A stretch of 64,000 nucleotides of DNA, from sequence record PQ464595.1. The stretch is one strand, 5' to 3'. Of this stretch, positions 1,258 to 17,328 are shown in pieces. The notes below the pieces were generated by a model. It worked only from the letters and a program-made list of their open reading frames with translations, ran no database searches and was not told the origin of the DNA. Each line of letters opens with the position of its first letter. The stretch's first letter is position 1. The position numbers and the translations under genes are program-made.

Positions 1258-1302
1258 GGACGGATCTTGCCACCCTAGAGGGTTAGTGCGTTTCGCCGCA
1301 TT
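1258..1302 (-). ncRNA. two-hairpin small RNA motif, copy A
   Basis: TGCG-GCGAAA-CGCA, ACCC-TCTA-GGGT, tail GGCAAGATCCGTCC; directly after TTGACT-17-TATAGT. Confidence 0.7.
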
Positions 1303-1349
1303 GATAGTACTATAACAAAAGGGCTGACCGAAGTCAACCCCTTTCTGAA

Positions 1350-1547
1350 TTAAAAATCGCAATGAACTGCGTCTTCACCCTGGCCGTGCGGATACAATTG
1401 ATCTTGCACTTCGCTCCACACATCGTTATAAGTGTTCGCGTTCTCTTGAGTGTACTCGCCGAGTACTGCTTCCATTGCCTCATTGATGCCGAGGTGTTTA
1501 CGTGCGAGTACGTTGTTTGCGAGTTGCTTGATTCTTTCAGTAGCCAT
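1350..1547 (-). CDS. hypothetical early protein
   Basis: GGAG RBS, own promoter. Confidence 0.75.
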   Translation of the reverse strand: MATERIKQLANNVLARKHLGINEAMEAVLGEYTQENANTYNDVWSEVQDQLYPHGQGEDAVHCDF

Positions 1548-1618
1548 TCTGTTACTCTCCGTTGTTTCAGTACTGATAGTATATGACAGGGGCTAACTGT
1601 TGTCAACCCCTAATTTGA

Positions 1619-1927
1619 TTAATCCAGTAAACCCATACGATCCGCAACCTGCCATGCTTCTGACCCGTATACTGGTTCAATCTCATTCCAGTGATCCGGG
1701 TTCAGACTTCCACCAGCAGCAAGATGTTTCTCAATTGCCAGGATACGGCGATTCTGTTTCTCACGTACTGCCTGTTGTTCGTGGAGTTCGTGAGTCATTT
1801 CGCTAGAAGTTTTCAGGGCAATGCGACGGCCTGTTTCTGTATCCTGACCAACGATGTAAAAGCTTGAGGCTTCTTGACCGTTATACTCTACCAGGTCATG
1901 ACGTACAAAAAAGGTTAATCTAGACAT
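1619..1927 (-). CDS. hypothetical early protein
   Basis: 102-aa ORF, own promoter. Confidence 0.8.
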   Translation of the reverse strand: MSRLTFFVRHDLVEYNGQEASSFYIVGQDTETGRRIALKTSSEMTHELHEQQAVREKQNRRILAIEKHLAAGGSLNPDHWNEIEPVYGSEAWQVADRMGLLD

Positions 1928-2004
1928 TTGTTTACTTCCTGTTGTTGTTTCAGTACTGATAGAATAGCAAAGGGGCTGAACTATGTCAACCCCTTATTTG
2001 TACT

Positions 2005-2847
2005 TTATGCGGCATCTACTAATGAAGTTGCCAACTGCCACAATTTAGAGTTAAAGTCTAAATTCTTGTCGATGTTAGTCACGCCACGTGTTGTACGGCG
2101 GCGGCCTGTATCAGTGCGGCCTGATTGTCCACCAGCCATTACGTTTTGCTGTACGATGTTAAACGTACTGTAAAGGCTGTTGCTGTTACGATCAGTACTG
2201 TTCACGTTGCGAGTATTCAACAACTGTTCAGGACTGTACAGGAAGTTGATCCCTTCGCCTGGTTTTGGTAAACCTTCTTTGGCGAAGTAACCAGCAACGG
2301 CAAATGATTTGCGTTGTTTGTCGTCTAACTGGATGCGTGACATTTCGCCTTTGTAACGGTCGATAAGGTCGAAGTCTTTAACAACCTCGAATACACCTTC
2401 GATCACGTCATCCATGATGTTATGGCCTTTGTGATAGATCTTAGTGTTGCTTTGAGTGTTACCCATTACCAGGCCGTTAGCACAAACGAAACGGAATTGA
2501 CCACTGATCAACTGATAAGCACTAGTGCCATCATTAGCATTCAGAAGGATGATTTCGTTTGCTTCACCTTCTTTCATACCAGGTTGACGGAAACGCAACA
2601 TATGCTTTGTGAATTCGCGTTTTGATTCATCGCGTACACGTGCTTGCGTTGCGAACATCGGGAAGTAGTTTTCCTGAGCGAGACGATCAATCACGTCGAT
2701 AGTTGGCACTGGTGCGAACTTAGCTGAACGTGATTCGTGTGCATCGTACTGGAATACTGACGGTACTACGTCCAGCAGTTCAGTTCTGGTCAGTGGGCGG
2801 TTTTCTTTGATTGCTTTACCGTTGATACCCTGATACATCTTAATCAT
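2005..2847 (-). CDS. DUF932/DUF945 family protein
   Basis: Recognisable motifs PSVF..HESRS, FTKHMLRFR, EIILLNANDGTSAYQL..GQFRFVCANGLV. Confidence 0.88.
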   Translation of the reverse strand: MIKMYQGINGKAIKENRPLTRTELLDVVPSVFQYDAHESRSAKFAPVPTIDVIDRLAQENYFPMFATQARVRDESKREFTKHMLRFRQPGMKEGEANEIILLNANDGTSAYQLISGQFRFVCANGLVMGNTQSNTKIYHKGHNIMDDVIEGVFEVVKDFDLIDRYKGEMSRIQLDDKQRKSFAVAGYFAKEGLPKPGEGINFLYSPEQLLNTRNVNSTDRNSNSLYSTFNIVQQNVMAGGQSGRTDTGRRRTTRGVTNIDKNLDFNSKLWQLATSLVDAA

Positions 2848-2923
2848 GATTCGTTCCTCTCGTTTGGTGTAAGGTAATAGTACTGGATTTTGTTTATGTT
2901 GTCCAGTACTATTTTGAATTTAA

Positions 2924-3163
2924 TTACTCGATTCCGCCATCAACAGGCCAGCAATCACGAATGAATTTAGAACGGGATGGATCATCTTTCAGTGTCTTTG
3001 TCAAGAGTACTGCGTGATCTTCCGCACCTTTTTCAGTACTGAATTCCGCACCTGGTTGATAGTGCTGGCGGTTGTTGTCGTGGTCAAGGGCTACAACGTC
3101 GAACGGACGAGCATCGCGATCAGACCAGACTCTTACTTTAAATTCAATTCCTGATTTAGCCAT
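2924..3163 (-). CDS. hypothetical protein (start moved to MAKSGIEF)
   Basis: GAGG RBS before ATG at 3163; the track's longer N-terminus runs through the promoter. Confidence 0.7.
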   Translation of the reverse strand: MAKSGIEFKVRVWSDRDARPFDVVALDHDNNRQHYQPGAEFSTEKGAEDHAVLLTKTLKDDPSRSKFIRDCWPVDGGIE

Positions 3164-3293
3164 TTTGTTTTGCCTCATTGCTGTTTCAATAACTTCATTA
3201 TACGTTATCCTGGGTTGAATGCAAGTACTATTCACGTTTTAATTTAAAAATAATTACTGTACATTCATCCAGTACTAATAGATTTTGAATACA

Positions 3294-3332
3294 CTATGCC
3301 ACCCTATAGGGTTAGTCAGTTTCGCCTGATTG
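3294..3332 (-). ncRNA. two-hairpin small RNA motif, copy B
   Basis: TCAG-GCGAAA-CTGA, ACCC-TATA-GGGT; tail diverged after GGCA; own sigma70 promoter. Confidence 0.65.
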
Positions 3333-3376
3333 ATAACAGTATAGCAAAAAAGGGCTGAACGTGTCAACCCTTTCTA

Positions 3377-3547
3377 TTAAAATATTTGCATTTCTTTTGC
3401 TACTGCCAGGCTGTAATAATAAAGAGCATACCAGGGCTTGACAAACGTTGTGGTGCAGTTATTAATATCTGCGTGGTTAAGTGTTAGTACTCCACGATTA
3501 GAATACAATCTAACTTTGCCGTTTCTGAATGATTTAAGTTCACGCAT
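3377..3547 (-). CDS. small hypothetical protein (56 aa, not in ORF track)
   Basis: MRELKSFRNGKV...; ATG 2 nt after the upstream stop. Confidence 0.55.
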   Translation of the reverse strand: MRELKSFRNGKVRLYSNRGVLTLNHADINNCTTTFVKPWYALYYYSLAVAKEMQIF

Positions 3548-3549
3548 GA

Positions 3550-3672
3550 TTAGAATACCAGTACGAAAGCGATGATTGTAATAATAGTAAGACGGATAAT
3601 GTCTTCCATATGTTTAGCTTCAATGTGTGCTAAACTTTCTTCTGTGTACTCTACAACGTATTTGGTTTTCAT
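3550..3672 (-). CDS. small protein with C-terminal hydrophobic helix (40 aa)
   Basis: GGAGG RBS, own promoter; MKTKYVVE...IIRLTIITIIAFVLVF. Confidence 0.6.
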   Translation of the reverse strand: MKTKYVVEYTEESLAHIEAKHMEDIIRLTIITIIAFVLVF

Positions 3673-3742
3673 GTTGCTATCCTCCGTTTCAGTACTGATA
3701 GAATAGCAAAAGGGCTTAACCTAAGTCAAGCCCTATTTTGAA

Positions 3743-4321
3743 TTAAAGGTAAGTTACTGACGCGTCGCGGGGATCTTCTTCAAAGTCCATATCATTTGCG
3801 ATGATAGTTTGTTTAACTTGTTCATCGCTGATAAGATCGTAATACGCTGTATCTAAATCAGAGTAGTATTCTTTACCCTGTTCAGTGATAAAGCCGTCGA
3901 TTTCTTTTTCAAGTTCTTCATACATTTCAGACTTTTTAGAAGTCATTTCGATATACCATTCACCGGACAACTCTGCGGCTGTAGTGTTGTAGTGAACATA
4001 ACGTGAACCGTGATCGCGGCTTACTTTACAGGTAATATCTTTAATGCGAATATGCTCATGTAAGCAACGGTAATGCGTCCAGCGTTTTTGTGAACGTAAA
4101 AACTTCTCAATATCCACATTGCCAGCCGTGAAACTTGCACCGTCGCCTTGTGAACAAAACCCGGAGTACTGAGATTCTACATCTTCAAAACCTACAGCTT
4201 CCAGAATAGAATGATGTTTCTCTTTAACCCAATCATTCCATTCCTGATAGTCAACGTTAATATCTCTGTTCAGTTCAATTGCTTTTTCTTGCTGTTCTGC
4301 GTTCAGTTCGTTAAATTTCAT
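3743..4321 (-). CDS. hypothetical protein (start MKFNELNAEQQEKAIE)
   Basis: Long ORF; GAG RBS before ATG at 4321. Confidence 0.8.
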   Translation of the reverse strand: MKFNELNAEQQEKAIELNRDINVDYQEWNDWVKEKHHSILEAVGFEDVESQYSGFCSQGDGASFTAGNVDIEKFLRSQKRWTHYRCLHEHIRIKDITCKVSRDHGSRYVHYNTTAAELSGEWYIEMTSKKSEMYEELEKEIDGFITEQGKEYYSDLDTAYYDLISDEQVKQTIIANDMDFEEDPRDASVTYL

Positions 4322-4473
4322 TTTGATATTCTCGCTTAAATGATTAAGGCCATTCCCTAATCCATGTAAAAGATTATACAGTACTGGATGAATAACGCAA
4401 GTACTATTCACGATTTAATTTATAAATGTTTACCTGTACAGATATACAGTACTTTTTAGTACTAAAAGCCATT

Positions 4474-4518
4474 GGACGTAACTTGCCACCCTATAGGGTT
4501 AGTCCATTTCGCTGGAGT
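4474..4518 (-). ncRNA. two-hairpin small RNA motif, copy C
   Basis: TCCA-GCGAAA-TGGA, ACCC-TATA-GGGT, GGCAAGTTACGTCC; TTGACT-17-TATACT upstream. Confidence 0.7.
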
Positions 4519-4566
4519 GAATACAGTATAGCAAAAAGGGCTAACCGAAGTCAACCCTTTATTTTC

Positions 4567-4788
4567 TTAATGTACTGCTTTAAAATCTTCCAACGTGAAA
4601 GGCATTGCCAGGGCGTTAATCTTATCCGCGATGATCTGGCGGTTAAAACCACTTAATGCGTTATTGACCAGGAGGCAACCCAACACGTTAAACTGATTGA
4701 AATCGCATACCTGGTTAATAGCTGCGTTTGATGCGATAGTTACTTCATCAGGTTCAGCGAAAAATTCTCTTAACATATCTTCAATCAT
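4567..4788 (-). CDS. hypothetical protein
   Basis: GAGG RBS, own promoter. Confidence 0.7.
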   Translation of the reverse strand: MIEDMLREFFAEPDEVTIASNAAINQVCDFNQFNVLGCLLVNNALSGFNRQIIADKINALAMPFTLEDFKAVH

Positions 4789-4862
4789 GGTAGTACCCTC
4801 GTTTGTTTTCAGTACTGATATTATTGATCAGGGGCGAACATATGTCAACCCCTGGAATGAAA

Positions 4863-5213
4863 TTAATTACAATGATAAACGATCTTGACAGGAAGATAAA
4901 CGCCGTGTTGAGGTACTGACGTTTTCATGGTAAACATAGATCCGGCCTGTTCGATTGTGCCAGTATCATTCCGGTAGATACTGTAATCTTTCCAGAATTG
5001 AACTACGTCCATATCTGTATCTTTCACCTGAACTTCGATCACTGGTTCAGTAACAGTGATTTGAATAATATGTTCAGGAGCGGCATTATCAACTTTCTGA
5101 TAGTTACCGTCGCCAGTACCTTGATACAGTGTGTAGCTAGGGCAAGTATAAACCTGAGTACCAGCGTTCGCGTATGATGCCACCAGCAGACCTAACAGAA
5201 GAAGTTTTCTCAT
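4863..5213 (-). CDS. putative exported protein
   Basis: Signal-peptide-like N-terminus MRKLLLLGLLVASYANA. Confidence 0.7.
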   Translation of the reverse strand: MRKLLLLGLLVASYANAGTQVYTCPSYTLYQGTGDGNYQKVDNAAPEHIIQITVTEPVIEVQVKDTDMDVVQFWKDYSIYRNDTGTIEQAGSMFTMKTSVPQHGVYLPVKIVYHCN

Positions 5214-5254
5214 TTCGTTGTACCTTGTTTGTTTTTCAGTACTGATAGAATAGC

Positions 5255-5283
5255 AAAAGGGTTAACCGAAGTCAACCCTTATT
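5255..5283 (-). terminator. intrinsic terminator overlapping a sigma70 promoter (example of a repeated module)
   Basis: GGGTTGAC-TTCG-GTTAACCC-TTTT immediately after a stop codon; TTGACT in the 5' arm, TATTCT 17 nt downstream. Confidence 0.75.
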
Positions 5284-5284
5284 T

Positions 5285-5755
5285 TTAAACTGATTGTATT
5301 GCGTTCATGATAGCTTCATACTTATCATAAACATCATCTGATTCTGTGTTGTGTGCGGCGTGAAAAACTGCCTTGACAGCGGCTTGATATTGTGCTGGTG
5401 GCACGGCCTTTAATGCTGTAGTAATATCTTTAATGTACGTTGGTTCGTCTTTGAACATAGCACGTAAGACATTAGGCAGATCTTTAATAGATGGTTCTGG
5501 TGTAGGTTCGCGGCCTGGCATGAGTCCTAACGATTTAAAGTACTTTAACTTTTCATCTGGATTCATGCGGGAAGTATCTATACCCTGTGATGGCATAGTG
5601 TTTAGCTTACCTTGTAAGCCTGTTCCCTGGTTACGTGATGAATGTTCGCCACCTTCACCAGCATTATGAGAATTAGATCTACGATTGCCATGACTCCACT
5701 TGTCAGCGTGTCCAGCCATTGTAGCATCTTTTTTGTTAACGAATTTACCTGGCAT
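5285..5755 (-). CDS. hypothetical protein
   Basis: AGGGG RBS before MPGKFVN. Confidence 0.7.
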   Translation of the reverse strand: MPGKFVNKKDATMAGHADKWSHGNRRSNSHNAGEGGEHSSRNQGTGLQGKLNTMPSQGIDTSRMNPDEKLKYFKSLGLMPGREPTPEPSIKDLPNVLRAMFKDEPTYIKDITTALKAVPPAQYQAAVKAVFHAAHNTESDDVYDKYEAIMNAIQSV

Positions 5756-5802
5756 AATAAAATCCCCTATACGATTATTATAATCATATTTAGGGGATTC
5801 TG

Positions 5803-6045
5803 TCAACGTCGAGCAATGAAATTGTTATATTGTTCATGAGTCATTAGGTTAAGTTTGCCATTGTCAATTACAATACGTTCATTGCGTGATACTTCTATCA
5901 CACTGAACAAGCCACAATTCAATTTGCGTGGTCTGACTTGTCCACCTTTATATTCTCGCACAATACGAATAGCCTTGTCAAGTACTTTAGTCTGAGCTTT
6001 AAAATGGATTCGTAATTGTGTATCATCTATCATGATCTTTTTCAT
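5803..6045 (-). CDS. hypothetical protein
   Basis: GGGGTG RBS before MKKIMIDD. Confidence 0.65.
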   Translation of the reverse strand: MKKIMIDDTQLRIHFKAQTKVLDKAIRIVREYKGGQVRPRKLNCGLFSVIEVSRNERIVIDNGKLNLMTHEQYNNFIARR

Positions 6046-6095
6046 TGATACACCCCAGGAATAAACAGGGGGCATATAACCCCCTGTATCGCATT

Positions 6096-6488
6096 TTAAG
6101 AGACTTTCTGTAAGTGTTTAGCCAGACGTACCGCCGTCATACTACGACGCCATGAGACACGGCACGGCTTGTTATTTGGCGTTTTCAGAGTCTGTTCGCC
6201 GATAATACCTGGCCGCTGGTTAGTGATAGTACTGGCATCCATCATCAGACGTTCACGCTTCAGGAAGTCAATAGTACTGTCAATCGCGGTATCCATTGAT
6301 TGATGCATCTCAATCTCTGAATGCTGTACAGTTTCCTGTACTTCTGGTACTTCCACCAGCACCGCCCAACGTTCACCAGTTGCAGCGTCTTTGCCGAAGT
6401 CTTTGAACTTTGCACTTTCGGCAGTACTCTCGTTCAGGAAGTTACGAGCCAGTGTTCTTGTACCGAAAAAGTGAGTCTGAGTAGTCAT
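6096..6488 (-). CDS. hypothetical early protein
   Basis: AAGGA RBS, AGTACTTGCGT-type promoter. Confidence 0.8.
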   Translation of the reverse strand: MTTQTHFFGTRTLARNFLNESTAESAKFKDFGKDAATGERWAVLVEVPEVQETVQHSEIEMHQSMDTAIDSTIDFLKRERLMMDASTITNQRPGIIGEQTLKTPNNKPCRVSWRRSMTAVRLAKHLQKVS

Positions 6489-6559
6489 TGTTTCTTTCCT
6501 TCTGTGTGGTTGATGTAAGTACTATAACAGTACTGATTGAATAACGCAAGTATTATTTT

Positions 6560-6970
6560 TTACTTTACAAAAGCTTTACCAGTTTGATAAATGTCAATAG
6601 CTTTCTTTGCCATTTCGTGCCGTTCAACATTCAAGCCTACAGCTTGCCACAATGCCTGGTATTGTCCGTTATTATTCACAAGGAACATAACCATATCATT
6701 TAATGTCTTTAGCTTGTATTCGCGAGGATGTTCTTTATTATAACGTTCCTTCGCTCGGTTGTACAACCTTTTTCTTTTAGGATCTGTAATATTTCCGAAT
6801 CCTGAAGTCTTGCCACGGTTGATCATTTCGTTATAATAATCATCCTCTGTGCGGTACTTCCTACGAGCACCCTGCCCCGCTGTGTTACGTGCGATCTCGT
6901 CAAGGGCAGTAGCTATACCTTTCGGCAACCCATAAACATTTTGACCCATTATTTCTTTTCCAATACACAA
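6560..6970 (-). CDS. hypothetical basic protein
   Basis: ORF on the coding strand; start uncertain. Confidence 0.65.
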   Translation of the reverse strand: MCIGKEIMGQNVYGLPKGIATALDEIARNTAGQGARRKYRTEDDYYNEMINRGKTSGFGNITDPKRKRLYNRAKERYNKEHPREYKLKTLNDMVMFLVNNNGQYQALWQAVGLNVERHEMAKKAIDIYQTGKAFVK

Positions 6971-7302
6971 TTGAATGATGAATTTTCAGTACTGATAAGC
7001 CCCATCATTTCATTCTTATCAGTATTCCATAAAGGAACGGTAACAACATGATTATGCCCTACAATATCCCCACGTTCCATATTAATGATTTGTGTGGTAG
7101 TTAATGTAAATTCTTCGTTTGAAATATAACGAGAATCATCATGAGTTTTGATAGTACAATTGTAAATTGGATCTACAGTACTAACGGGATTTACAGTTAC
7201 CTTGACAACAGGTGGAGTCTTATTAGATTCTACCCAACGGCCTGTATGAATGCCAGCGGAAAAAGCCAGTACTGCGATTGCTACTACTGCGATTCTTTTC
7301 AT
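6949..7302 (-). CDS. putative exported or membrane-anchored protein
   Basis: GGAG RBS before MKRIAVVAIAVLAFSAG. Confidence 0.7.
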   Translation of the reverse strand: MKRIAVVAIAVLAFSAGIHTGRWVESNKTPPVVKVTVNPVSTVDPIYNCTIKTHDDSRYISNEEFTLTTTQIINMERGDIVGHNHVVTVPLWNTDKNEMMGLISTENSSFNCVLEKK

Positions 7303-7375
7303 TTCAATTCTCCGTTCACTTGATGTAATCATTATAAAGTACTCGCATACATAAAGCAAGTACTTTTGATAATGT

Positions 7376-7501
7376 TTACTCGCAAGTATAGCTATTGCCA
7401 GATTGACCCATTATCAGGGTACAGGTATTATTTGAATACGTGACAGTACAACCACGTAAAGCAAAGAATACCACAACGGCGATAAGTATAAACTTAAGCA
7501 T
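7376..7501 (-). CDS. small putative lipoprotein (41 aa, not in track)
   Basis: MLKFILIAVVVFFALRGC lipobox-like; start overlaps the upstream gene end. Confidence 0.55.
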   Translation of the reverse strand: MLKFILIAVVVFFALRGCTVTYSNNTCTLIMGQSGNSYTCE

Positions 7502-7694
7502 TTGCGATCTCCTGGTTATATGTTACCATCCACGCTTTTTCGTGGGCTTTAAACATCTTGGCAAGATCAAGATCAATCTTACGGAAAGCGTCATCATGTT
7601 TCCATGATCTAGCACCTTTGAGGTACTTAGCACGGCTTTCGCGGTTTTCACGAGCCGCCATAAGTGGGAACGAAATCACTGGACCGATGAACAT
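7494..7694 (-). CDS. hypothetical protein
   Basis: GGAGG RBS before MFIGPV. Confidence 0.65.
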   Translation of the reverse strand: MFIGPVISFPLMAARENRESRAKYLKGARSWKHDDAFRKIDLDLAKMFKAHEKAWMVTYNQEIANA

Positions 7695-7836
7695 ATTGCT
7701 ACCCTCCATGCGATTCACCGTGAACCGCTTCGATGTGATAATAGTACTACTAACAGAAAACAAAAGCAAGAGTTATTTTAAAGAATGCAAAAGAAAAAGC
7801 CCCAATTAAGGGGCTTGACTTTTCAGTACTGTTATG

Positions 7837-8706
7837 TTACTTCTGGCCTGGTAGTGAAACACCAGTCAGTGAGCTATTAGGCACAACAGTAGTCGGGCTA
7901 ATACCGTTCCACGTGGTGGCGTAGGTATACGCTACGAGAGTATCGCCAGCCTGTTTCAACGCTTCGCCTTTAGCACGGATTGCCGATGCTTCTGCGTCGC
8001 CTTTCGCCTTGATACCGTTCGCCTCTGCTACTAACTGAGCATACTTAGAATCAGCGGCGGCTTTCGCATTAGTCAACTGGATCTGAGAAGTAATTTTAGC
8101 TTTTTCCCATTCCTGCTGTGACTGTTCAACGGCTACCTGTGCCGTCATACGAGTTTCAACCGCTTTATCATATGCTGGCGAGAAAGACAAGCCCTCGATC
8201 TGAATACTGGAGATCGTTACAGGTTCGTTCTTCATAGCCTCTTTCACGGCCTTGTTAACGTCAGCCACCAGCCGTGTGCGATCCTGTACAGCACTGATTG
8301 CTGTATACTGACCGAATACGTTTTCCAGGGCTTGCGGAATCTGGCGATCAATAACACGTGCGATCATCGCTTCAACAGTGTTATATTTCTTATACAGATC
8401 CTCGACCTGACCAGGCGTTACGTTGAACGATACAGATACTGCCATATCTGCTGGCTGCTGATCGCGGCTATATGCCTGGAGCTTTTCCCAACGGCGTGAT
8501 TCGCCAGTTACGGAAATGTCTTTAGTACTGGTAACAAACGGCATCACCAGGTGGAAACCGGGTTGAGCCACTTCGACGAATTTACCGTTTCGCAGTACTA
8601 CAGTACGCTCTGTTTCTTGCGTGGTGAATGACGACGCGATAGCTGAGATTAACAGTACTAACGCACCGAAACCAACCAGACCCCAGGACACAAATTTCTT
8701 TGACAT
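7837..8706 (-). CDS. SPFH/band 7/prohibitin family membrane protein
   Basis: N-terminal TM, VVLRNGK...PGFHLVMPF, SPFH core and Ala/Lys coiled coil. Confidence 0.92.
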   Translation of the reverse strand: MSKKFVSWGLVGFGALVLLISAIASSFTTQETERTVVLRNGKFVEVAQPGFHLVMPFVTSTKDISVTGESRRWEKLQAYSRDQQPADMAVSVSFNVTPGQVEDLYKKYNTVEAMIARVIDRQIPQALENVFGQYTAISAVQDRTRLVADVNKAVKEAMKNEPVTISSIQIEGLSFSPAYDKAVETRMTAQVAVEQSQQEWEKAKITSQIQLTNAKAAADSKYAQLVAEANGIKAKGDAEASAIRAKGEALKQAGDTLVAYTYATTWNGISPTTVVPNSSLTGVSLPGQK

Positions 8707-8715
8707 AGTATTACC

Positions 8716-9916: not shown

Positions 9917-9918
9917 TG

Positions 9919-10116: not shown

Positions 10117-10203
10117 GATAACTTCCTCTTAATTAATGGTTAGTGTGTTTCAGTAAGTTCATTATATAGTACTCGCATAAGAAAGCAAGTACTATTATTG
10201 AAT

Positions 10204-10434: not shown

Positions 10435-10445
10435 GATATATCCTC

Positions 10446-10514
10446 TTAATTAAATTCAACAGACAGCATTATAACAATAAAGATAAACAAAAGAAACTCT
10501 ATTTTGCGACTCAT
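10446..10514 (-). CDS. 22-aa hydrophobic micropeptide
   Basis: GAGG RBS, promoter upstream; MSRKIEFLLFIFIVIMLSVEFN. Confidence 0.45.
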   Translation of the reverse strand: MSRKIEFLLFIFIVIMLSVEFN

Positions 10515-10608
10515 TTCTTTATCCTCGTTTGCCCTTCCATGTGATACATATTACCATAACCAACGAACAAAGCAAGTACTATTTTCATTTTAATTTATAA
10601 CTTTTTTT

Positions 10609-10653
10609 GAACGGATCTTGCCACCCTATAGGGTTAGTCAGTTTCGCCTGATT
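10609..10653 (-). ncRNA. two-hairpin small RNA motif, copy E
   Basis: TCAG-GCGAAA-CTGA, ACCC-TATA-GGGT, GGCAAGATCCGTTC; own promoter. Confidence 0.7.
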
Positions 10654-10706
10654 GATAACAGTATAGCAAAAAGGGATTGAACTTGTCAACCCCTATTTTT
10701 GAATCT

Positions 10707-11009
10707 TTACAAATCGCGGATCGCCGTGGTATGTGTAATGTATGGGGAATGACCCATCAAATCCACCTTTGCCATCAGGGATATATGATCCCCTGCTGTT
10801 GGTAATGCTAACGCTTCCTGTACTGTGATCACTTCACCGAAAGAGTACTGATATTGTACAAAGCCCAACCAGCTATTAAAGATCTCGCCTGGTTTACATC
10901 CGTGCTGTACTAAGCACACATTATCAATAACAATCGGTTTACCTGTATGATCTCTCGTAGTACAGCTATAAGTAAATGCTTTCGCGAAGTTATCAATGTT
11001 ATCAGACAT
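10707..11009 (-). CDS. hypothetical protein
   Basis: ORF coupled to the upstream gene. Confidence 0.65.
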   Translation of the reverse strand: MSDNIDNFAKAFTYSCTTRDHTGKPIVIDNVCLVQHGCKPGEIFNSWLGFVQYQYSFGEVITVQEALALPTAGDHISLMAKVDLMGHSPYITHTTAIRDL

Positions 11010-11250
11010 TTTCTAACGTTACCTTAAGTGATTGTGTCATACGATGCCGCATTGCTTTTAGTACCATGCGACACGCTAACACTTTACCTTTATCATCCAG
11101 ACGTTTAAAGCCTGGCCGTTTCATCGTATGGGATTGTAACTGGGTCCAATTGTCTACCCGTTGTCCCTTGCGATAGATTATACAATGAATCTTGTCAGAA
11201 CTACAAGTAAAGATTACAACTAATCGTCTAGTACTATAGAATAGATCCAT
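11002..11250 (-). CDS. hypothetical protein
   Basis: AGGAG RBS. Confidence 0.6.
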   Translation of the reverse strand: MDLFYSTRRLVVIFTCSSDKIHCIIYRKGQRVDNWTQLQSHTMKRPGFKRLDDKGKVLACRMVLKAMRHRMTQSLKVTLENV

Positions 11251-11297
11251 AAGCTCCTGTACAGCGTTTTAAGAGGGGGCAATATGCCCCCTAGTGA

Positions 11298-11675
11298 TTA
11301 TACGTCTACCGTATCGTAAACTGTGCCAGTACCGATCCAGACGCTATAGCGTGGCAATGAATCCCATTGGTCGGAAGTCATGCCCAACGTGTGAAGATAG
11401 TCAGTATTTGCCATGCCTTTGACATTGTGAGCAGTACTGTATAACTTGCCCTTGTATTCATACGCCAGGCACATTTTGCGACTGTTCACATTACAAAGCA
11501 TTGATGTAACCAGGGTATTACATGCGAAGCGTTCACGAACTAATGACAATTCAGTACTGATACGCTTATTCAATCTGTCAACTTCTTTTTTACATTCAGC
11601 TTTTGTTTTCCCCATCATTTCGATATGGGAAAGTGCACCTACAATGTCAGCCTGGATTTCGTAAATCTTATTCAT
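11298..11675 (-). CDS. hypothetical protein
   Basis: AGGAG RBS. Confidence 0.7.
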   Translation of the reverse strand: MNKIYEIQADIVGALSHIEMMGKTKAECKKEVDRLNKRISTELSLVRERFACNTLVTSMLCNVNSRKMCLAYEYKGKLYSTAHNVKGMANTDYLHTLGMTSDQWDSLPRYSVWIGTGTVYDTVDV

Positions 11676-11736
11676 GTGATAACTCCTTTCGTTTAGTGTG
11701 AATACATAGTACTTGAAACTGACATATAACGCAAGT

Positions 11737-12333
11737 TTAAATTGTAGTTTTTATTACTTTCGCAGTGTCATTATTCCACCTTGCCCGATAAAAAGCATTT
11801 ACCACTTTACGATTACAGCCATAATCTAATAACTTAATATTATCATTTCGATCTTTACCCAAGTTGGATGATTTAATATCACCCTCATTACATGAATCAG
11901 AATGTAAATCAATGTCTTTTATTGATTTAAAGAATTTTGAATTTTTAGGGTTATATCGTTTAGCGGCTGCTATTAACCCTTTTTTTGTTTCTGTACTATT
12001 AATTAAACGTTGCATTACAATAAACCGATAATCAAGAGTATCGCACATTTCAGGATAAAGTTTAGCAAAGTACTTTTTATAATGTTCGCATCCAATACTT
12101 AAAGAATCCCATAACCGATATTCACATTCATTTTGTTCTACCCCAATTTCTGATAGACAAATTTTAATTACCCAATTATCGTTTAATTCAAAAACGATTC
12201 TACTAGACCACTTGTTAACTTTGCCTAATTGTTTTAGTCCAGCAGCACGACACATAGCAATGATTTCATCATTGGTTCTATGGTGTAAGCTATTAACAAA
12301 CTTTTTCCAGTAACGCATTGTATTGAACCTCAA
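11737..12333 (-). CDS. protein kinase-like protein
   Basis: SRIVF...WVIKI (subdomains I-II), G..QN..E (helix C), DIKSSNLG (catalytic loop), KLLDYG (DFG-like). Confidence 0.75.
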   Translation of the reverse strand: MRFNTMRYWKKFVNSLHHRTNDEIIAMCRAAGLKQLGKVNKWSSRIVFELNDNWVIKICLSEIGVEQNECEYRLWDSLSIGCEHYKKYFAKLYPEMCDTLDYRFIVMQRLINSTETKKGLIAAAKRYNPKNSKFFKSIKDIDLHSDSCNEGDIKSSNLGKDRNDNIKLLDYGCNRKVVNAFYRARWNNDTAKVIKTTI

Positions 12334-12412
12334 AGAGTATCTGATATAAAGATATTACCATATCCAACAAACAAAGCAAGTACTATTTGCGTTTTAATTT
12401 ATAATATTTTCA

Positions 12413-12458
12413 GGACGGATCTTGCCACCCTATAGGGTTAGTCCATTTCGCTGGAGTG
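12413..12458 (-). ncRNA. two-hairpin small RNA motif, copy F
   Basis: TCCA-GCGAAA-TGGA, ACCC-TATA-GGGT, GGCAAGATCCGTCC; own promoter. Confidence 0.7.
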
Positions 12459-12512
12459 ATTACATAGTACTATAAAAGGGATTGAATAGTCAACCCCTTT
12501 TTTTGTAAAGAT

Positions 12513-12695
12513 TTAAACTTCTTGCCAGCGTCCATTATAGAACGTATGCGTTTCAATATACATGTTGTTAATGTTGCTGATATATCCTACACTATCGGCA
12601 GCCCTGCGAGTAGCGGCATTCTTTGCTCCACGTTCGGACTTCACCTGGATAGGATAAGCCTTAGAACCGATCCCAATTGCGTATACTTTAGCCAT
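12513..12695 (-). CDS. hypothetical protein
   Basis: AGGAG RBS before MAKVYAIG. Confidence 0.65.
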   Translation of the reverse strand: MAKVYAIGIGSKAYPIQVKSERGAKNAATRRAADSVGYISNINNMYIETHTFYNGRWQEV

Positions 12696-12855
12696 TTTTA
12701 CGCTCCTGGATGCCTTTACATTCGCGAGGTAAACGACACTCGCACAACCAACGGGAGACGCCGCCAACATAACGGGCTGTAGGGCATTTGTTCGCGTTCT
12801 CCTGAGTGAACAAAGGCCATTCCACATTACCCCAGGTAGGTCTAACAGTTTTCAT
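12688..12855 (-). CDS. small Cys-containing protein
   Basis: GAGG RBS before MKTVRPTWG. Confidence 0.55.
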   Translation of the reverse strand: MKTVRPTWGNVEWPLFTQENANKCPTARYVGGVSRWLCECRLPRECKGIQERKNG

Positions 12856-12870
12856 TTTAAAACCTCGTTT

Positions 12871-12936
12871 GCTTAAGTGATAACTCATTGTAAAGTACTC
12901 GCCAGTAATAAGCAAGTACTTTTGACAATTAATTAT
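12871..12936 (-). repeat. 66-bp promoter cassette, identical to 13204-13269
   Basis: Exact direct repeat containing TTGCTT-17-TACAAT and two AGTACT sites. Confidence 0.9.
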
Positions 12937-13189
12937 CGGTGTAATTATAATCTAATTCACCTGATTCAATCAGATTATCAACGATCCGAATAACGCGATC
13001 ATTAGTGATCCCATACTCGCTATCTAAATTTTTATTAAGATACGCCAGTACAGTAATACACTGTTCATCTGTCAGGTTTTCCAGATGTTCAGCAGCAGAA
13101 CGAATATCGTCAGCAGTCCAAATATCTGCGACAATCTCTGCATCTTCATTGTACTGTTTCAGTTGTTCAATCAGTTCTGATACTTTCAT
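12929..13189 (-). CDS. hypothetical protein
   Basis: GAGG RBS before MKVSEL. Confidence 0.7.
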   Translation of the reverse strand: MKVSELIEQLKQYNEDAEIVADIWTADDIRSAAEHLENLTDEQCITVLAYLNKNLDSEYGITNDRVIRIVDNLIESGELDYNYTDN

Positions 13190-13203
13190 TTTTACATCCT
13201 CTC

Positions 13204-13269
13204 GCTTAAGTGATAACTCATTGTAAAGTACTCGCCAGTAATAAGCAAGTACTTTTGACAATTAATTAT
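13204..13269 (-). repeat. 66-bp promoter cassette, identical to 12871-12936
   Basis: Exact direct repeat. Confidence 0.9.
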
Positions 13270-13652
13270 AGATCTTTTTTGCGTTTCACGTCTGCCAGGT
13301 TTTCAGATACTGGAATATCATGTTCACGACAAAAACGTGATAACGTGCCGCAATCCGGTACTGGATAAGTACACGCCGCATCAAACAACGCCAGGGCAGT
13401 CTGGTCGAAACAACGCTCATAACCATATTGGAACGTATCTTGTGCCAGGTCGATCCATACTGTACCATCTTCTAACGGGCGATTGTACACGTTAGCTACA
13501 AGCTCGTTAGCACGTTCTACAGGCACCAGGACGCTAACATATACAGAATGATATGTGTTACCATCGCCACGGTTCCACCAGCGTTTAGCCGTCATAGTGA
13601 CCGCGTGAACGTCAGCGAGGTTAACAGTCTGGAAAATGGTTCTGTGTGTCAT
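13266..13652 (-). CDS. hypothetical protein
   Basis: GAGG RBS before MTHRTIF. Confidence 0.7.
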   Translation of the reverse strand: MTHRTIFQTVNLADVHAVTMTAKRWWNRGDGNTYHSVYVSVLVPVERANELVANVYNRPLEDGTVWIDLAQDTFQYGYERCFDQTALALFDAACTYPVPDCGTLSRFCREHDIPVSENLADVKRKKDL

Positions 13653-13761
13653 GGGTATATCCTCAATTAAAAAGTGGTTCACTGCTTCAGTACTGCCTAT
13701 TATACAGATTACTCATTTATGATCAAGTACTATCTCGTTTTAATTTACTTTATTTTAAAAC

Positions 13762-14075
13762 AAAAAATGCCCCAGGCTATGGGGCATTAATTGGTGAATA
13801 CGGTTTCCTTTCGGAAAGTCTAAGACGGCACGAATGCGATCATTAGAACTTCACACCACGCGGCTATTTAATAAGTAAGTTTGTTTAATTTATTAAGTAC
13901 CTGATAATCTTTCAGTACTAACCACAATCACCCTGTAGATGTGCTTTCGCTTTGTGGTTCCTGGTATAGACTTATTTTGTGTGCTATACGTCTTAGGGTT
14001 CTACGTACTGCCAGCAGGATATCAGCCTACTGGTTTCAATCTTAACTCCTTTGGCGTCTCGCCGTGTCGTTTCGA
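13762..14075 (-). ncRNA. candidate ~310-nt structured RNA
   Basis: TTGATC-17-TAATAT promoter, several hairpins, GCCCCA..TGGGGC-T6 terminator, no ORF of 60 aa or more on this strand. Confidence 0.5.
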
Positions 14076-14177
14076 TGTAGCTATATTATCATAACCAGCG
14101 AACCGATCAAGCGATTTAATTACTTATTTTCGATTCTTTTTCCTTGCATTCCTTATTCAGTACTGGCATAATACCTA

Positions 14178-14222
14178 CATACCGGCGAAACGGGAGACTC
14201 TAGAGAGTGGCAAGTTGCGTCT
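14178..14222 (+). ncRNA. two-hairpin small RNA motif, copy G
   Basis: TTGCAT(14144)-17-CATAAT; CCG-GCGAAA-CGG, ACTC-TAGA-GAGT, GGCAAGTTGCGTCT. Confidence 0.7.
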
Positions 14223-14243
14223 AAAATTCATTACTAATTCACT

Positions 14244-14289
14244 GGACGGATCTTCCCACCCTTGAGGGTTAGACCATTTCGCTGGATTG
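14244..14289 (-). ncRNA. two-hairpin small RNA motif, copy H
   Basis: CCA-GCGAAA-TGG, ACCC-TCAA-GGGT, GGGAAGATCCGTCC; convergent with copy G. Confidence 0.7.
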
Positions 14290-14341
14290 ATAGTACTTTA
14301 ACATAAAGGGCTAACCGAAGTCAACCCTAGATTTGTAAAGA

Positions 14342-14557
14342 TTATCTAACTTTCGGATTTACAATTTCAGCTAATCGGATCTGAATGTTTCCGTTGTTTA
14401 GTACTGAATCAGTGAGATCCTTCGCGGGTGATAGTTCCAGGAGTAAATCAGTGTCCAGGTCATCACTCCAAAACTTAATATCTGGATCGAGGTTCCCCGA
14501 TTCTTTCGCCAGCTTGTTAAGTTTCTTCAGTACTTTTCTAATCTCACTTAATCTCAT
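14342..14557 (-). CDS. hypothetical protein
   Basis: GGAG RBS, own promoter. Confidence 0.7.
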   Translation of the reverse strand: MRLSEIRKVLKKLNKLAKESGNLDPDIKFWSDDLDTDLLLELSPAKDLTDSVLNNGNIQIRLAEIVNPKVR

Positions 14558-14634
14558 TTTTGTAACTCCGTTTCCTTAGTGTGATACTAAGGTATCATAA
14601 GGGCTTGATGATTACAAGCCCTGAATTGTAAAGA

Positions 14635-15297
14635 TTATAACTTTTCTAATGCTTCCCTGATCCGTTCCTGTAGGTTCGTCGTGACAATGTTTTCCAGTGT
14701 CAGATCGTCAGGGTAGTTAATATCTGAGTTTTTCAGTACTTCACCCAGGCTAGGATCTTCCTGTACAATCCTCGCCGCCAGGCTATACCAAATTTGGTTG
14801 TTCTCAAAGTCCAGAACATCCCAAACGGCTTCATTAGCAGAATCACGCCATTTCATTTCTGATAACGCGAGGTTATAGTAATGCTGATACATGGTTTCAG
14901 TTAATGGCGTTTTCATCTTCTCTTTAAAGTACTGAATCAGACGATCCACCAGCTTGATCCGGTTCCCGCCGTGGATCGTGTCGTCGTCGTACAAGTTACG
15001 TTGAGCCGTGTACGCAATCCGCATATGATCGCGATTGTCGTTACTCATACCCTCCACCGGATAGGCATGATCTAATCCCATTGCTTCAAAGGCATCACAA
15101 AGAAAGTTAGTGCCGATCCCTGTTACGTCCTGGTTAGGCGTATGGGCGAAAACGTGCCAGCAGATCCCAAAAGTACGGGTAAGGTTGAACGGCTTACCTT
15201 TAACAGTGGTGTAAGTGTCGCCACGGTCTAAGCAGTCTTTCATCTGCTCCAGTACTTCTAAGGCCATTCTATACTGCTCTAATTTAAATGCGTTCAT
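14635..15297 (-). CDS. hypothetical protein
   Basis: 220-aa ORF, GAGGAG RBS. Confidence 0.8.
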   Translation of the reverse strand: MNAFKLEQYRMALEVLEQMKDCLDRGDTYTTVKGKPFNLTRTFGICWHVFAHTPNQDVTGIGTNFLCDAFEAMGLDHAYPVEGMSNDNRDHMRIAYTAQRNLYDDDTIHGGNRIKLVDRLIQYFKEKMKTPLTETMYQHYYNLALSEMKWRDSANEAVWDVLDFENNQIWYSLAARIVQEDPSLGEVLKNSDINYPDDLTLENIVTTNLQERIREALEKL

Positions 15298-15437
15298 GTT
15301 TACTTCTCCTCGTTTCGATAAGTTCTATTATCCATATTTGAACGGACAATGCAAGTACTGATTTACTTTTTTATTCACAAATAAGAAAACCCGCTAAAAC
15401 GCTCTGTAATGCGTTCTAACGGGTTTTATATGTTAGC

Positions 15438-15707
15438 TTATGCCTTTAGTGATTCTGCGTTAAAAGCCCCGCTAATGGGCTTACATTGGAGATTTACGGC
15501 ATAGTTTACTTTCTTGTGAATGATATACATACACGAATCAAATTGATGTGAATAGGGCATATCATAGATCCGACGCTGTACAAGTACGCCGCCAACTACA
15601 AAAGCCAGGTAGCCGCTAAACTCTGTAGTACGCGGCCCCGTTGCGGTCATAGTCTTTGCGATCCTGGTACGCGGATCAATCAGGTCTGAAATGGGTTTAA
15701 GTTCCAT
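15438..15707 (-). CDS. hypothetical protein
   Basis: GAG RBS. Confidence 0.65.
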   Translation of the reverse strand: MELKPISDLIDPRTRIAKTMTATGPRTTEFSGYLAFVVGGVLVQRRIYDMPYSHQFDSCMYIIHKKVNYAVNLQCKPISGAFNAESLKA

Positions 15708-15851
15708 AGGCGTTTACTCTCAATTAAAGGTAGTCTAAAACGCTCTAGGATTGATTCTAAGCGTTTCTAACAGTACTGTGACCCGATGATATTACAGTAC
15801 TGTTAGAACTGCTTAAGGGGGCATATAGCCCCCTTAGTTTACGCCGTGGGA

Positions 15852-16535
15852 TTACTCGCCAGCGGTTTCAGTTTCGACTTTGTACTGTTTGATAAAGTCG
15901 TCGCGGTCGAGCTTGCTTTCTGACAGAATCGCTTTGAGTTCGTTACCCATGTTACCTTTTACCGGCATATCGTACTGTTTGCCGTTGTATTCAACAGTAA
16001 CACGTTCGTAAGACACTACCGGAGCCGCCGCCGCTTTCAGTTTCGCTTTCGCACCAGCTTCAACCGCTGCTTTCGCCATCGTCAGATCCATACCTGAATC
16101 AATCAGCAGTTTCAGCATGGCTTTCTTCTCTTCTTCCAGTGCCTTTTGTGCGGCCTGGGCTTCCGCTTCGCGTTGTGCTTTCGCGGCGTTGCGTGATGCT
16201 TCGCGTTCCTGTTTACGTTTAGCGATGTTTTCCGCTTCGCGTTCCAGTACTGCCGGAATCAGTGCCACCGTCGCAGACAGCAGGCGGGAAATGATTTCTA
16301 CGCTGTCAGACTTATCAACCAGATAATCAGCCAGGGCGTTAGACTGTACGCCGACGAAAGTCGCAACGTCGCTTTCGAACTGAGCCAGTACTTCAGCAGT
16401 ATGTTCGGTCTGACCTTCTGGCAGGTTAGGCAGAACCGGAGTAGTCGCCAGAACGATGCTGTTCAGGGTTACTTTCGGAGCTTTAACAGCAGTTTCAACG
16501 GTAGCAGCAACAACAGTTTTGTTTGACTTAGACAT
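15852..16535 (-). CDS. H-NS/MvaT-like nucleoid-associated protein (putative)
   Basis: Coiled coil ending KAMLKLLIDSGMDL (cf. H-NS MLIADGIDP), flexible linker, C-terminal domain YNGKQYDMPVKGNMGNELK...LDRDDFIK; high-expression codon bias. Confidence 0.55.
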   Translation of the reverse strand: MSKSNKTVVAATVETAVKAPKVTLNSIVLATTPVLPNLPEGQTEHTAEVLAQFESDVATFVGVQSNALADYLVDKSDSVEIISRLLSATVALIPAVLEREAENIAKRKQEREASRNAAKAQREAEAQAAQKALEEEKKAMLKLLIDSGMDLTMAKAAVEAGAKAKLKAAAAPVVSYERVTVEYNGKQYDMPVKGNMGNELKAILSESKLDRDDFIKQYKVETETAGE

Positions 16536-16674
16536 AATATATACCTTCTTAAAAGTGATTGATTAAATTGTTTGTTTGTCTGATTCGCTCTTGCGTCTCA
16601 GTGATTACATCTTACAACATTTCGTTTCTTTCGGTCAAGGACTTTTTCAACTTTCTAGAAACTTTTTTTTCGTT

Positions 16675-16822
16675 TATCTCCAGGCGGTAGATAGGACGCT
16701 AACAGTTAGTTAGCCTTTATAACGCTGCGTTGCCTTACTGGTCATACGCGGTAAACAGTACTATCTAATCTAGCCCTGTTACCGTTTCCGTATCATGCGG
16801 CGAACCTGACCGCCTTTCGATA
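16675..16822 (-). ncRNA. candidate ~150-nt structured RNA
   Basis: Own TTGACT/TAGAAT promoter; closing helix AGGCGGT/ACCGCCT plus internal hairpins; no ORF. Confidence 0.45.
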
Positions 16823-17216
16823 ATTGACATTCTACACTACTCAATCTGACAGTCAAGTACTTTCGCAAATCTTTTTCGCGAAACCGCGTAAGTGTTTGTT
16901 TCAGTACTGAATGCCAGGTTTTTAAAGAGCGGTGTTTCGTGTCGTTGGAGCTATACTATCATAACCATCGAACCATGCAAGGACTATTTCACTATTTCTT
17001 TAAAATACTTTCGATCCTCGCTTTCCTTCCTTATATGCACTTATTGGTTCCTGTATCGCGTTCTAAGCCCTTTAACAGTACTAAGATACATAATCGCCCC
17101 GCTGTGAACCTGGTACGCTTAAACGGCTTTATATTACGTATAAGGAAGGGCTAAAAAGTTTTGTAAAGATTGTAGAAAGTCCTTGCATTATGATCTCAGT
17201 ACTGGCATAATACCTA

Positions 17217-17263
17217 CATAGACGCGAGAAAGCGGGAACCCCAGGGGGTGGGGAGTTGCGTCC
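17217..17263 (+). ncRNA. two-hairpin small RNA motif, copy I
   Basis: TTGCAT(17183)-17-CATAAT; CGC-GAGAAA-GCG, ACCCC-AG-GGGGT, GGGGAGTTGCGTCC. Confidence 0.7.
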
Positions 17264-17284
17264 AAAATTCATATAAAAAACTAC

Positions 17285-17328
17285 AGACGGATCTTGCCAC
17301 CCTCTAGGGTCGCCCATTTCGCTGGTGT
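17285..17328 (-). ncRNA. two-hairpin small RNA motif, copy J
   Basis: CCA-GCGAAA-TGG, ACCC-TAGA-GGGT, GGCAAGATCCGTCT; convergent with copy I. Confidence 0.7.

Follow-up and report, generated by a model that had tools for sequence, protein, structure and literature searches.

The first minutes of transcription in giant T4-related phages that use the host RNA polymerase are largely unknown, and to our knowledge the way in which immediate-early transcription is extended into delayed-early transcription is still unsettled for T4 itself. A two-hairpin motif of about 45 nucleotides (nt), which stands at ten places in the early block of Erwinia phage Kaldavass, offers a testable handle on this period and raises a simple question: what is this element, and what could it do? 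The stretch analysed here (the window) comprises 64,000 nt and is identical to positions 1-64000 of the Kaldavass genome (PQ464595.1); with 366,556 bp, this genome bears out the jumbo phage that had been suspected in an earlier reading of the letters alone (hereafter the sequence-only reading). Kaldavass and its kin belong to the RaK2-like jumbo myoviruses, which are related to T4; Xanthomonas phage XbC2 stands close to Kaldavass (88.7% identity), and Eneladusvirus, GAP32 and CBB are remoter relatives. The analysis shows that the motif is a real structured 5' leader RNA under selection. The arrangement of the sequence around it gives good support to the view that the ten copies would form the first ~45 nt of transcripts made by the host sigma70 RNA polymerase in the early block.

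Ten copies of a covarying leader RNA

A covariance model, R1, was made from the ten window copies and run unfiltered on both strands of the whole 64 kb. Exactly these ten copies were recovered, with scores of 57.9-75.5 bits and E values of 1e-16 to 1e-22, while the next-best match, at 10.7 bits, was the palindromic hairpin 2 on the opposite strand; chance is therefore excluded. The coordinates and strands assigned to the ten copies by the sequence-only reading were all recovered (Table 1) and only the boundary of copy B had to be amended: it had been located correctly and drawn too short, as the motif reaches ~3287 and carries a different tail type (GTGTATTC), that of the Eneladusvirus copies. 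The ten copies had also been taken as equivalent, which they are not, since D, G and I are reversed and two face-to-face pairs are present.

The sequence-only reading had called for a search of Rfam beside the covariance model and had recognised no named family. Rfam 15 at gathering thresholds returned only five tRNAs from the window, and at E <= 5 positions 1-18700 gave noise only (17-23 bits against thresholds of 40-84), with direct repeats of clustered regularly interspaced short palindromic repeats (CRISPR), ToxI, phage RNAs, small ribozymes and riboswitches unmatched. An analogy with RNA anti-CRISPRs had been suggested; no CRISPR-repeat family was matched in Rfam, and the motif is likewise absent from the papers on CBB, RaK2, Eneladusvirus and fEgEco12. 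Five clustered tRNA genes, Ala-TGC, Met-CAT (x2), Lys-CTT and Cys-GCA, lie at 59837-61296 on the minus strand.

Hairpin 1 has a stem of 3-4 bp that is free in sequence and a conserved closing loop, G-N-G-A-A-A; hairpin 2, ACCC-N3-4-GGGU, is conserved in sequence, and a semi-conserved tail comes next. Compensated stem-1 changes were already visible when RNAalifold was applied to the ten window copies alone. The two-hairpin fold with a conserved loop 1, earlier proposed from covariation, was upheld, and hairpin 2 turned out to be conserved too. The stem-1 variants and the ACTC/GAGT stem 2 of copy G are as described at the time, and so are the loop-2 variants, the list of which was incomplete in that D and I carry CAGG.

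An alignment of 56 copies, 54 of them distinct, was assembled from the window and ten related loci (Serratia phage BF, RaK2, fHe-Yen9-03, XbC2, CBB, Hallingskeid and four IMG/VR contigs). Because this alignment was fitted to the model it is biased toward structure, and the 95.1% of cells that are paired in the 54 distinct copies has to be read in that light. The covariation score was 0.395, compared with 0.113 +/- 0.016 for shuffles, none of 500 of which reached it, and at most 0.047 for slid partners. In helix 1, the three core positions pair in every sequence (100%), each through three pair types, and rank top in mutual information among all column pairs; the copies themselves display more than ten different stem-1 sequences. 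Helix 2 (ACCC/GGGU) is near-invariant, with four compensated double changes (ACUC/GAGU, ACCU/AGGU and ACGC/GCGU among the compensated changes) and one G-U; the G-U pairs of hairpin 2 fit the transcribed strand only. Mutual information over all column pairs revealed neither a pairing of the tail nor a pseudoknot, the leftover signals reflecting the forward and reverse subfamilies only. A few loop-1 variants, G-N-G-U-A-A or shorter, occur in CBB and Hallingskeid, and hairpin 1 is lost, with hairpin 2 and the tail kept, at one locus each of RaK2 (L121:1137) and Hallingskeid (L125:2464). Stem 1 has been repeatedly randomised, while loop 1, the linker and hairpin 2 remain constant from the Erwinia phages to those of E. 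coli and Salmonella.

It could be asked whether a small peptide explains this conservation. The forward copies share one open frame with a similar peptide, and GenBank places tiny coding sequences (CDSs) over several of them (1249-1362, 3275-3367, 4462-4554 and 10585-10689). However, the reverse copies share the nucleotides and not the frame, which shifts after hairpin 1; internal stops occur in 5 of the 56 copies; indels of 1 nt are tolerated in the linker and in loop 2; the predicted transcript start, 2 nt before the motif, leaves no start codon or ribosome-binding site; and the other phage records compared leave these open reading frames (ORFs) unannotated. The frame shift, the stops and the indels led us to reject a peptide-coding reading, whose chance of being right is close to nil. 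The tiny 'hypothetical protein' CDSs over the cassettes, which also include 9167-9289 and 17129-17317, are most likely gene-caller artefacts.

Some 60 homologues were found in Mimasvirus, Eneladusvirus, Alcyoneusvirus and Asteriusvirus jumbo phages. Asteriusvirus coliphages (121Q, PBECO4, G17, fEgEco12, Sharanji and others) and Salmonella jumbo phages share the reverse-type leader (that of D and I) at 91-95% identity across 39-56 nt; whole-genome average nucleotide identity between genera is just ~23-30% (PMC13070987). In fEgEco12 the reverse-type leader, at 1298-1349 on the minus strand, faces a diverged forward partner, and additional copies lie at 1082-1132 and 4768-4818. Over the 9 kb examined in Asteriusvirus, the copies lie at most 5 kb from the left end, three of them at 1.1-1.35 kb, heading the early block. 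Kaldavass, XbC2, BF and fHe-Yen9-03 have 10-11 copies each, and the examined stretches of Hallingskeid and fEgEco12 have 3-5. As judged from these sequences, the left-end pair is clade-wide and the dispersed forward copies are a Mimasvirus/Eneladusvirus expansion. A pattern scan of IMG/VR used too loose a pattern, and most of its 118 loci are chance matches; only L008, L009, L026, L065, L086 and L117 are genuine.

Promoters, cassettes and face-to-face pairs

All genes in the first 17 kb are carried by the minus strand, and leader copies D, G and I lie on the plus strand. Homologues of this early block are found inside the terminal repeats of CBB (22,456 bp), Muenster (20,030 bp, by PhageTerm) and fEgEco12 (20,993 bp), the termini of the last having been confirmed by restriction digests (PMC13070987). 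Judged from these relatives, the Kaldavass early block is probably a direct terminal repeat of ~20 kb. Position 1 of XbC2 aligns at Kaldavass ~18274, which puts the I/J pair ~1 kb from the probable repeat boundary; copy I, whose type is the most conserved clade-wide, is aimed toward that boundary. A 68-nt non-coding block at 18154-18221 is 84% identical between Kaldavass and coliphage fEgEco12 (L128:176-243), where its counterpart lies ~180-240 nt off the confirmed physical genome end.

In the phages listed, each copy with enough upstream sequence sits directly after a -35/-10 pair, and the gap between the -10 box and the motif is a few nt in every copy inspected. The individually promoted copies of the sequence-only reading are thus real, each standing directly behind a sigma70-type promoter; the reading had passed over the terminator hairpin at the -35, the tandem second promoter, the terminal repeat and the likeness between tail and iterons. 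In six of the seven forward copies (A, B, C, E, F and H) the -35 TTGAC of the first promoter (P1) lies within a covarying GC hairpin that is followed by a T-run, and this hairpin reads as the terminator of the upstream unit. The hairpin is absent upstream of J, as expected because J is the block's first promoter, and also upstream of the J orthologues in BF, fHe-Yen9-03 and XbC2. The reverse copies D, G and I have promoters of the general early type, A-rich/GTACTTGC...AGTACTG-TATAAT. Since two promoter architectures bear the motif, it is tied to the transcript 5' end and not to one promoter type. Downstream of the forward leaders there is an A/T-rich UP-like block, then a general-type second promoter (P2) 75-90 nt on, a short 5' untranslated region (UTR) and a gene; the tandem arrangement of P1, leader and P2 recurs in BF, fHe-Yen9-03, RaK2, Hallingskeid and CBB.

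Table 1. The leader copies and the promoter, terminator and repeat features around them in the window; bits are scores of covariance model R1.
Feature	Position	Strand	Remarks
Leader copy A	1258-1302	-	stem 1 UGCG/CGCA; 74.3 bits
Leader copy B	3287-3332	-	stem 1 UCAG/CUGA; model match 3282-3334, 64.1 bits
Leader copy C	4474-4518	-	stem 1 UCCA/UGGA; 71.9 bits
Leader copy D	9241-9287	+	reverse type, opposite to gene direction; 57.9 bits
Leader copy E	10609-10653	-	75.5 bits
Leader copy F	12413-12458	-	74.8 bits
Leader copy G	14178-14222	+	reverse type; stem 2 ACUC/GAGU; faces H; 66.2 bits
Leader copy H	14244-14289	-	forward partner of G; 67.7 bits
Leader copy I	17217-17263	+	reverse type; faces J; 58.9 bits
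Leader copy J	17285-17328	-	first forward promoter of the early block; 64.7 bits
P1 of A	1309-1340	-	GC hairpin 1340-1321 and T-run, -35 TTGAC, -10 TATAGT; PeSL-like terminator/promoter
P1 of B	3338-3372	-	hairpin 3372-3350; TTGACA-18-TATACT (11/12)
P1 of C	4525-4558	-	hairpin 4558-4537
P1 of E	10660-10694	-	hairpin 10694-10672; TTGACA-18-TATACT (11/12)
P1 of F	12464-12499	-	hairpin 12499-12476
P1 of H	14295-14328	-	hairpin 14328-14307
P1 of J	17335-17364	-	TTGACA-18-TACTAT; no upstream hairpin
Promoter of D	9207-9235	+	perfect TTGACA-17-TATAAT (12/12)
Promoter of G	14144-14172	+	TTGCAT-17-CATAAT, spacer AGTACTG
Promoter of I	17179-17211	+	GTCCTTGCAT...AGTACTGGCATAAT, general early-promoter type
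UP-like A/T-rich block and P2 after leader A	1197-1245	-	GTACTTGCGT-16-TATACT
UP-like block and P2 after leader B	3197-3245	-	
UP-like block and P2 after leader C	4373-4421	-	
UP-like block and P2 after leader E	10548-10596	-	
UP-like block and P2 after leader F	12352-12400	-	
Bidirectional terminator hairpin	9315-9338	.	AGTACTGG-loop-CCAGTACT; ends the D transcript and gene 9347-9646(-)
Iteron-like array	17500-17665	.	AGCC(G/A)TC(T/C)A units, both orientations, 280-450 nt downstream of the I start

Two further hairpin-promoters, 3734-3690 and 5280-5237, have neither leader nor P2 and run straight to a ribosome-binding site and a gene. They are plain PeSLs (promoter-early stem-loops), the stem-loop terminators fused to sigma70-like early promoters that lie among the small early ORFs of T4-type phages (PMC4122927). 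About 19 leaderless promoters of the general GTACTTGC type are present on the minus strand in 1-18 kb (from 432 to 17981; for example 926, 7363, 9710, 10192, 12919, 13252, 13730, 15358, 16642, 16860 and 16984), with an A-rich UP-like block, GTACTTGC at the -35 and often GAGTACT before TATAAT; a tandem of three lies in the ORF-free 16.6-17.0 kb downstream of J. The promoter regions at 12919 and 13252 (12840-12950 and 13175-13285) match almost completely over at least 80 nt and represent a promoter and 5' UTR that have been duplicated locally. The palindrome AGTACT is strongly over-represented: 1-18 kb contains 98 copies where 5.6 are expected, and 18-64 kb contains 164 where 15 are expected (example sites are 312, 3690, 5237, 9314, 13688 and 17719-18379). 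CAGTACTG sites lie where leaderless promoters start their transcripts and are also found in terminator stems and, within promoter spacers, immediately ahead of the -10; AGTACT is probably a second genome-wide regulatory word of Kaldavass.

Downstream of the leaders of J, H and I come 590-1390 nt that have no plausible ORF on the same strand. At 13790-14180 and 16540-17215 the H and J transcripts cross 400-650 nt without a minus-strand ORF of at least 30 codons; the plus-strand CDSs 13939-14171 and 16576-17107 look spurious, given that the homologous stretches carry no annotation in XbC2. As for the genes of the cassettes, the annotated GTG start at 4411 of gene 3743-4411 overlaps P2 of cassette C, and its start is likely to be the ATG at 4321, which matches the BF homologue. 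An unannotated ORF of 22 codons at 10446-10514 (minus strand), which has a ribosome-binding site and encodes a hydrophobic peptide, lies between P2 of E and gene 10204-10434.

Transcription probably starts at the A of a conserved CA, 7 nt past the -10. With this predicted start, stem 1 of the forward copies would be preceded by just ~2 unpaired nt, which, together with the link of the motif to transcript 5' ends on two promoter types, recalls a 5'-terminal tag that would protect against 5'-end-dependent decay, with or without a protein, or mark the RNA as of phage origin. The reverse copies have ~5 unpaired nt; in addition, plain protection needs neither a conserved loop nor a hairpin 2 conserved in sequence, in long operons the distal cistrons would lie beyond the reach of one 5' tag, and most early promoters are without the motif. 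Given these points, we regard protection of the 5' end as improbable.

Copies G/H and I/J form promoter pairs that face each other. In both, 21 nt separate the two motifs, and the start-to-start spacing in relatives is roughly 110-125 nt. Each pair folds as one long imperfect hairpin of ~45 bp, G/H at -42.2 kcal/mol (z -4.5) and I/J at -45.1 kcal/mol (z -4.1), and only in these pairs, not in A-F, are the predicted overlapping 5' RNAs complementary, over ~114 nt. XbC2, BF and fHe-Yen9-03 keep both pairs, Hallingskeid has one and fEgEco12 a diverged one. All this would suit an antisense/RNase III module, in which the pair is the essential unit, the loops serve fast RNA-RNA pairing and read-through RNA from G or I could pair with all other forward leaders; the topology is also that of the countertranscript systems ColE1 RNA I/II and P22 sar/ant. 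Nevertheless, six of the ten copies are single, an arbitrary overlap would do as well, so that a motif shared by both partners is left unexplained, and so is a covarying stem 1 beside a fixed loop 1. An antisense function as the primary role of the leader seems improbable.

Copy D has the anatomy of a small RNA (sRNA) gene across genera: a perfect promoter, the motif, a 25-nt AU-rich linker and a conserved terminator delimit an sRNA-like unit of ~100 nt, of which D is the 5' domain, and both the promoter and the terminator (stem and loop) are conserved in XbC2, L008, BF and fHe-Yen9-03. Neither D nor G has a same-strand gene downstream, and the copies with the highest conservation are found within the terminal repeat, 1.1-1.3 kb away from the left physical end that has been confirmed. 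These features bring to mind an abundant trans-acting small RNA or decoy, made from the DNA that enters first, which would titrate a host protein involved, for instance, in defence or RNA decay; its short length would be ensured by the face-to-face promoters and by the AU-rich stretch that follows the tail. The distantly related jumbo phage PA5oct has an extremely abundant non-coding RNA (ncRNA), a parallel only, as the text of the RNA-seq preprint reports ncRNAs without their sequences. On the other hand, no terminator follows the tail of the forward copies, which continue into a promoter and genes; no target is known, and neither a CRISPR repeat, ToxI nor any other Rfam family matched. The copies are also dispersed and not in tandem, a point on which the analogy with ToxI mimics drawn by the sequence-only reading breaks down. 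We hold a decoy to be rather unlikely.

The leader tail, of the GATCCGTCC type in Kaldavass and of the GTGTATCTA type in BF and in copy B, shares a CCGTCY core with the iteron-like array, which lies inside a gene-free stretch of ~1.2 kb beside the probable terminal-repeat boundary. The array is also present in BF (L002:680-800) and fEgEco12 (L128:780-920), that is, in three genera. Of 20 CCGTC[CT] sites on both strands of the 64 kb, 5 are in leader tails and 6 in the array. Since this core is shared, the 3' third of the motif may serve as a protein-binding site in its own right, on DNA or on RNA, which tail and terminal array would have in common, and the array itself could be an origin or a packaging/terminase site.

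The 11 sites in tails or array also favour a reading in which the conserved unit is DNA: the ~190-bp block of hairpin/P1, leader, UP-like block and P2 would be a mobile cassette of the PeSL type, or its palindromes and tail would bind a protein, for instance that of the terminal iteron array. The PeSL architecture is indeed present (PMC4122927), copy number varies among relatives (10-11 against 3-5 in the stretches examined), and copy E and its XbC2 orthologue differ by a whole stem type that is found in other copies too. However, more than ten compensated stems and strand-specific G-U pairs are unexpected for a double-stranded DNA site or for mere homology, as are the compensated double changes of hairpin 2, and the PeSLs described have no structured leader. 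We rate a role mainly as a cassette or DNA site as quite unlikely.

A possible cis-acting role in early transcription

The reading that we favour, tentatively and by analogy, is that the leader is a cis-acting nascent-RNA element that modifies early transcription in the manner of nut or put; we give it a probability of about 0.3. The nascent leader would act in cis on the polymerase that has just made it, either by itself or by way of a protein of host or phage origin that recognises loop 1 and hairpin 2, and the sequence-specific parts of the leader suggest recognition by such a factor. Leader-bearing transcripts would then behave unlike those from the ~19 leaderless early promoters, passing hairpin terminators as well as Rho on long untranslated stretches. 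At the face-to-face pairs, the ~45-bp imperfect hairpin and the complementary partner could layer antisense or RNase III effects on this action.

Read-through was ranked first among possible actions because the leader heads the early block, because genes follow the minus-strand terminators 9338-9315 and 7816-7797 with no recognisable promoter between, because H, J and I lead into long ORF-free stretches, and because putL of phage HK022 likewise begins right after pL. The hairpin and T-run terminators that separate the cassettes fit a control of read-through.

Several points weigh against this reading. In the searchable literature, neither expression nor 5' ends nor termination is reported for a phage of this clade. 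Because the hairpins have only 3-4 bp, while put needs 63-73 nt, long stems and a triplex, an RNA-only mechanism is doubtful, and no arginine-rich N-like protein was recognised among the 38 early ORFs (no Arg-rich N-terminus and at most 5 Arg per 20-residue window, a weak test). The terminator 25 nt beyond D and the lack of a gene downstream of G fit a stand-alone small RNA better than an antiterminator. Moreover, read-through is not obviously needed, since a P2 follows each forward leader and the next cassette restarts transcription. Folding of each of the ten copies singly was thermodynamically ordinary (z -1.2 to +0.4), so that the case for structure rests on covariation, which is strong with the homologues included. 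Finally, copies within a genome may have been homogenised by recombination, as PeSLs are, which would inflate their apparent conservation.

A bolder form of the cis-acting reading, which we consider rather unlikely, would make the leader a minimal module of ~35-45 nt that reprograms the host RNA polymerase or recruits a host factor seconds after DNA entry, throughout the RaK2-like clade and including phages of E. coli K-12. At the face-to-face pair ~1.2 kb from the genome end, this module would be coupled to an antisense partner and to the iteron array, as a joint unit controlling early transcription and the genome end (replication or packaging). If true, it would be a combined control unit of a kind undescribed for T4-related phages.

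Part of this was already known, namely the promoters of the clade, which the CBB paper gives as 38-nt strings from -35 to -10 only, and terminator-promoter cassettes in the form of PeSLs. Promoters and leaders are not discussed in the papers on RaK2, Eneladusvirus and fEgEco12, and no account of the leader motif, its covariation, the tandem promoters, the face-to-face pairs or the link to iterons was found in Rfam or the searchable literature. The leader is a new structured-RNA family for the databases, which also bears on annotation, as gene callers put spurious small CDSs on the motif. It ties early promoters to features of the terminal repeat and the genome end, and its range takes in Erwinia phages as well as coliphages that can be grown on laboratory strains of E. 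coli.

Comparison with put, nut and other known systems

The put RNA of HK022, a processive antiterminator that works as RNA alone, has 63-73 nt and two long stem-loops, the first with a triplex, and binds the zinc-binding domain of beta' (PMC9378689). Both put and the leader are nascent RNAs with two adjacent hairpins, placed right after an early promoter with terminators downstream, in an early region punctuated by terminators. They differ in that the leader has ~33-45 nt and stems of 3-4 bp, whereas put is longer, with long stems and a triplex. Moreover, HK022 is lambdoid and Kaldavass a T4-related jumbo phage of unrelated host range, and HK022 has no counterpart to ten copies, some of them antisense to genes. 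In phage O276, which carries the HK022 immunity region (L127), putL is annotated at 2505-2567 on the minus strand and the -10 of pL lies at 2583-2588. Homology with put was tried and rejected: R1, run unfiltered on O276, matched neither putL nor putR (3728-3784), its best hit elsewhere reaching 7.5 bits. Of the analogy with put made in the sequence-only reading, the position stands, putL coming directly after pL, and the size, the stem length and any similarity by the model do not. The first 8 nt of two reverse leaders (9241-9248 and 17217-17224) are the same as an 8-mer at the pL/putL start of HK022 (L127:2570-2578), which is probably chance.

Lambda nut, too, is a small RNA signal just past an early promoter, and boxB resembles hairpin 1 in its short GC stem and purine-rich G...A loop. 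The loop of hairpin 1 has six nt, however, and not five, and the leader, unlike nut, has a conserved second hairpin. An approximate boxA-core pattern matched four times on both strands of 18.7 kb, about the number expected by chance, and never beside a leader, which counts as a lead only. The leader is not a member of the put family and probably not of the nut family. Likenesses to CRISPR repeats, promoters of single-subunit RNA polymerases, the ops element, coat-protein operators and rRNA loops were weak and were dropped. ToxI consists of tandem direct repeats next to a toxin gene, while the leaders lie 1.2-4.7 kb apart or in inverted pairs.

ColE1 RNA I/II and P22 sar/ant are countertranscript systems with face-to-face topology, and G/H and I/J resemble them in their face-to-face promoters and in complementary 5' segments with small stem-loops. 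In the leaders, by contrast, the same sense motif is present in the two partners, the majority of copies stand alone, and no controlled replication or immunity gene is known.

The PeSLs of T4-type phages share with the window cassettes a hairpin terminator/promoter unit that is repeated between the small ORFs of a plastic early region. In the PeSLs that have been described, the promoter is followed at once by the Shine-Dalgarno sequence, with neither a structured leader nor a tandem second promoter (PMC4122927), a layout that in the window is seen only in the two leaderless hairpin-promoters at 3734-3690 and 5280-5237. In the other cassettes, the -35 lies inside the hairpin stem, and a 45-nt leader, an UP-like block and P2 intervene.

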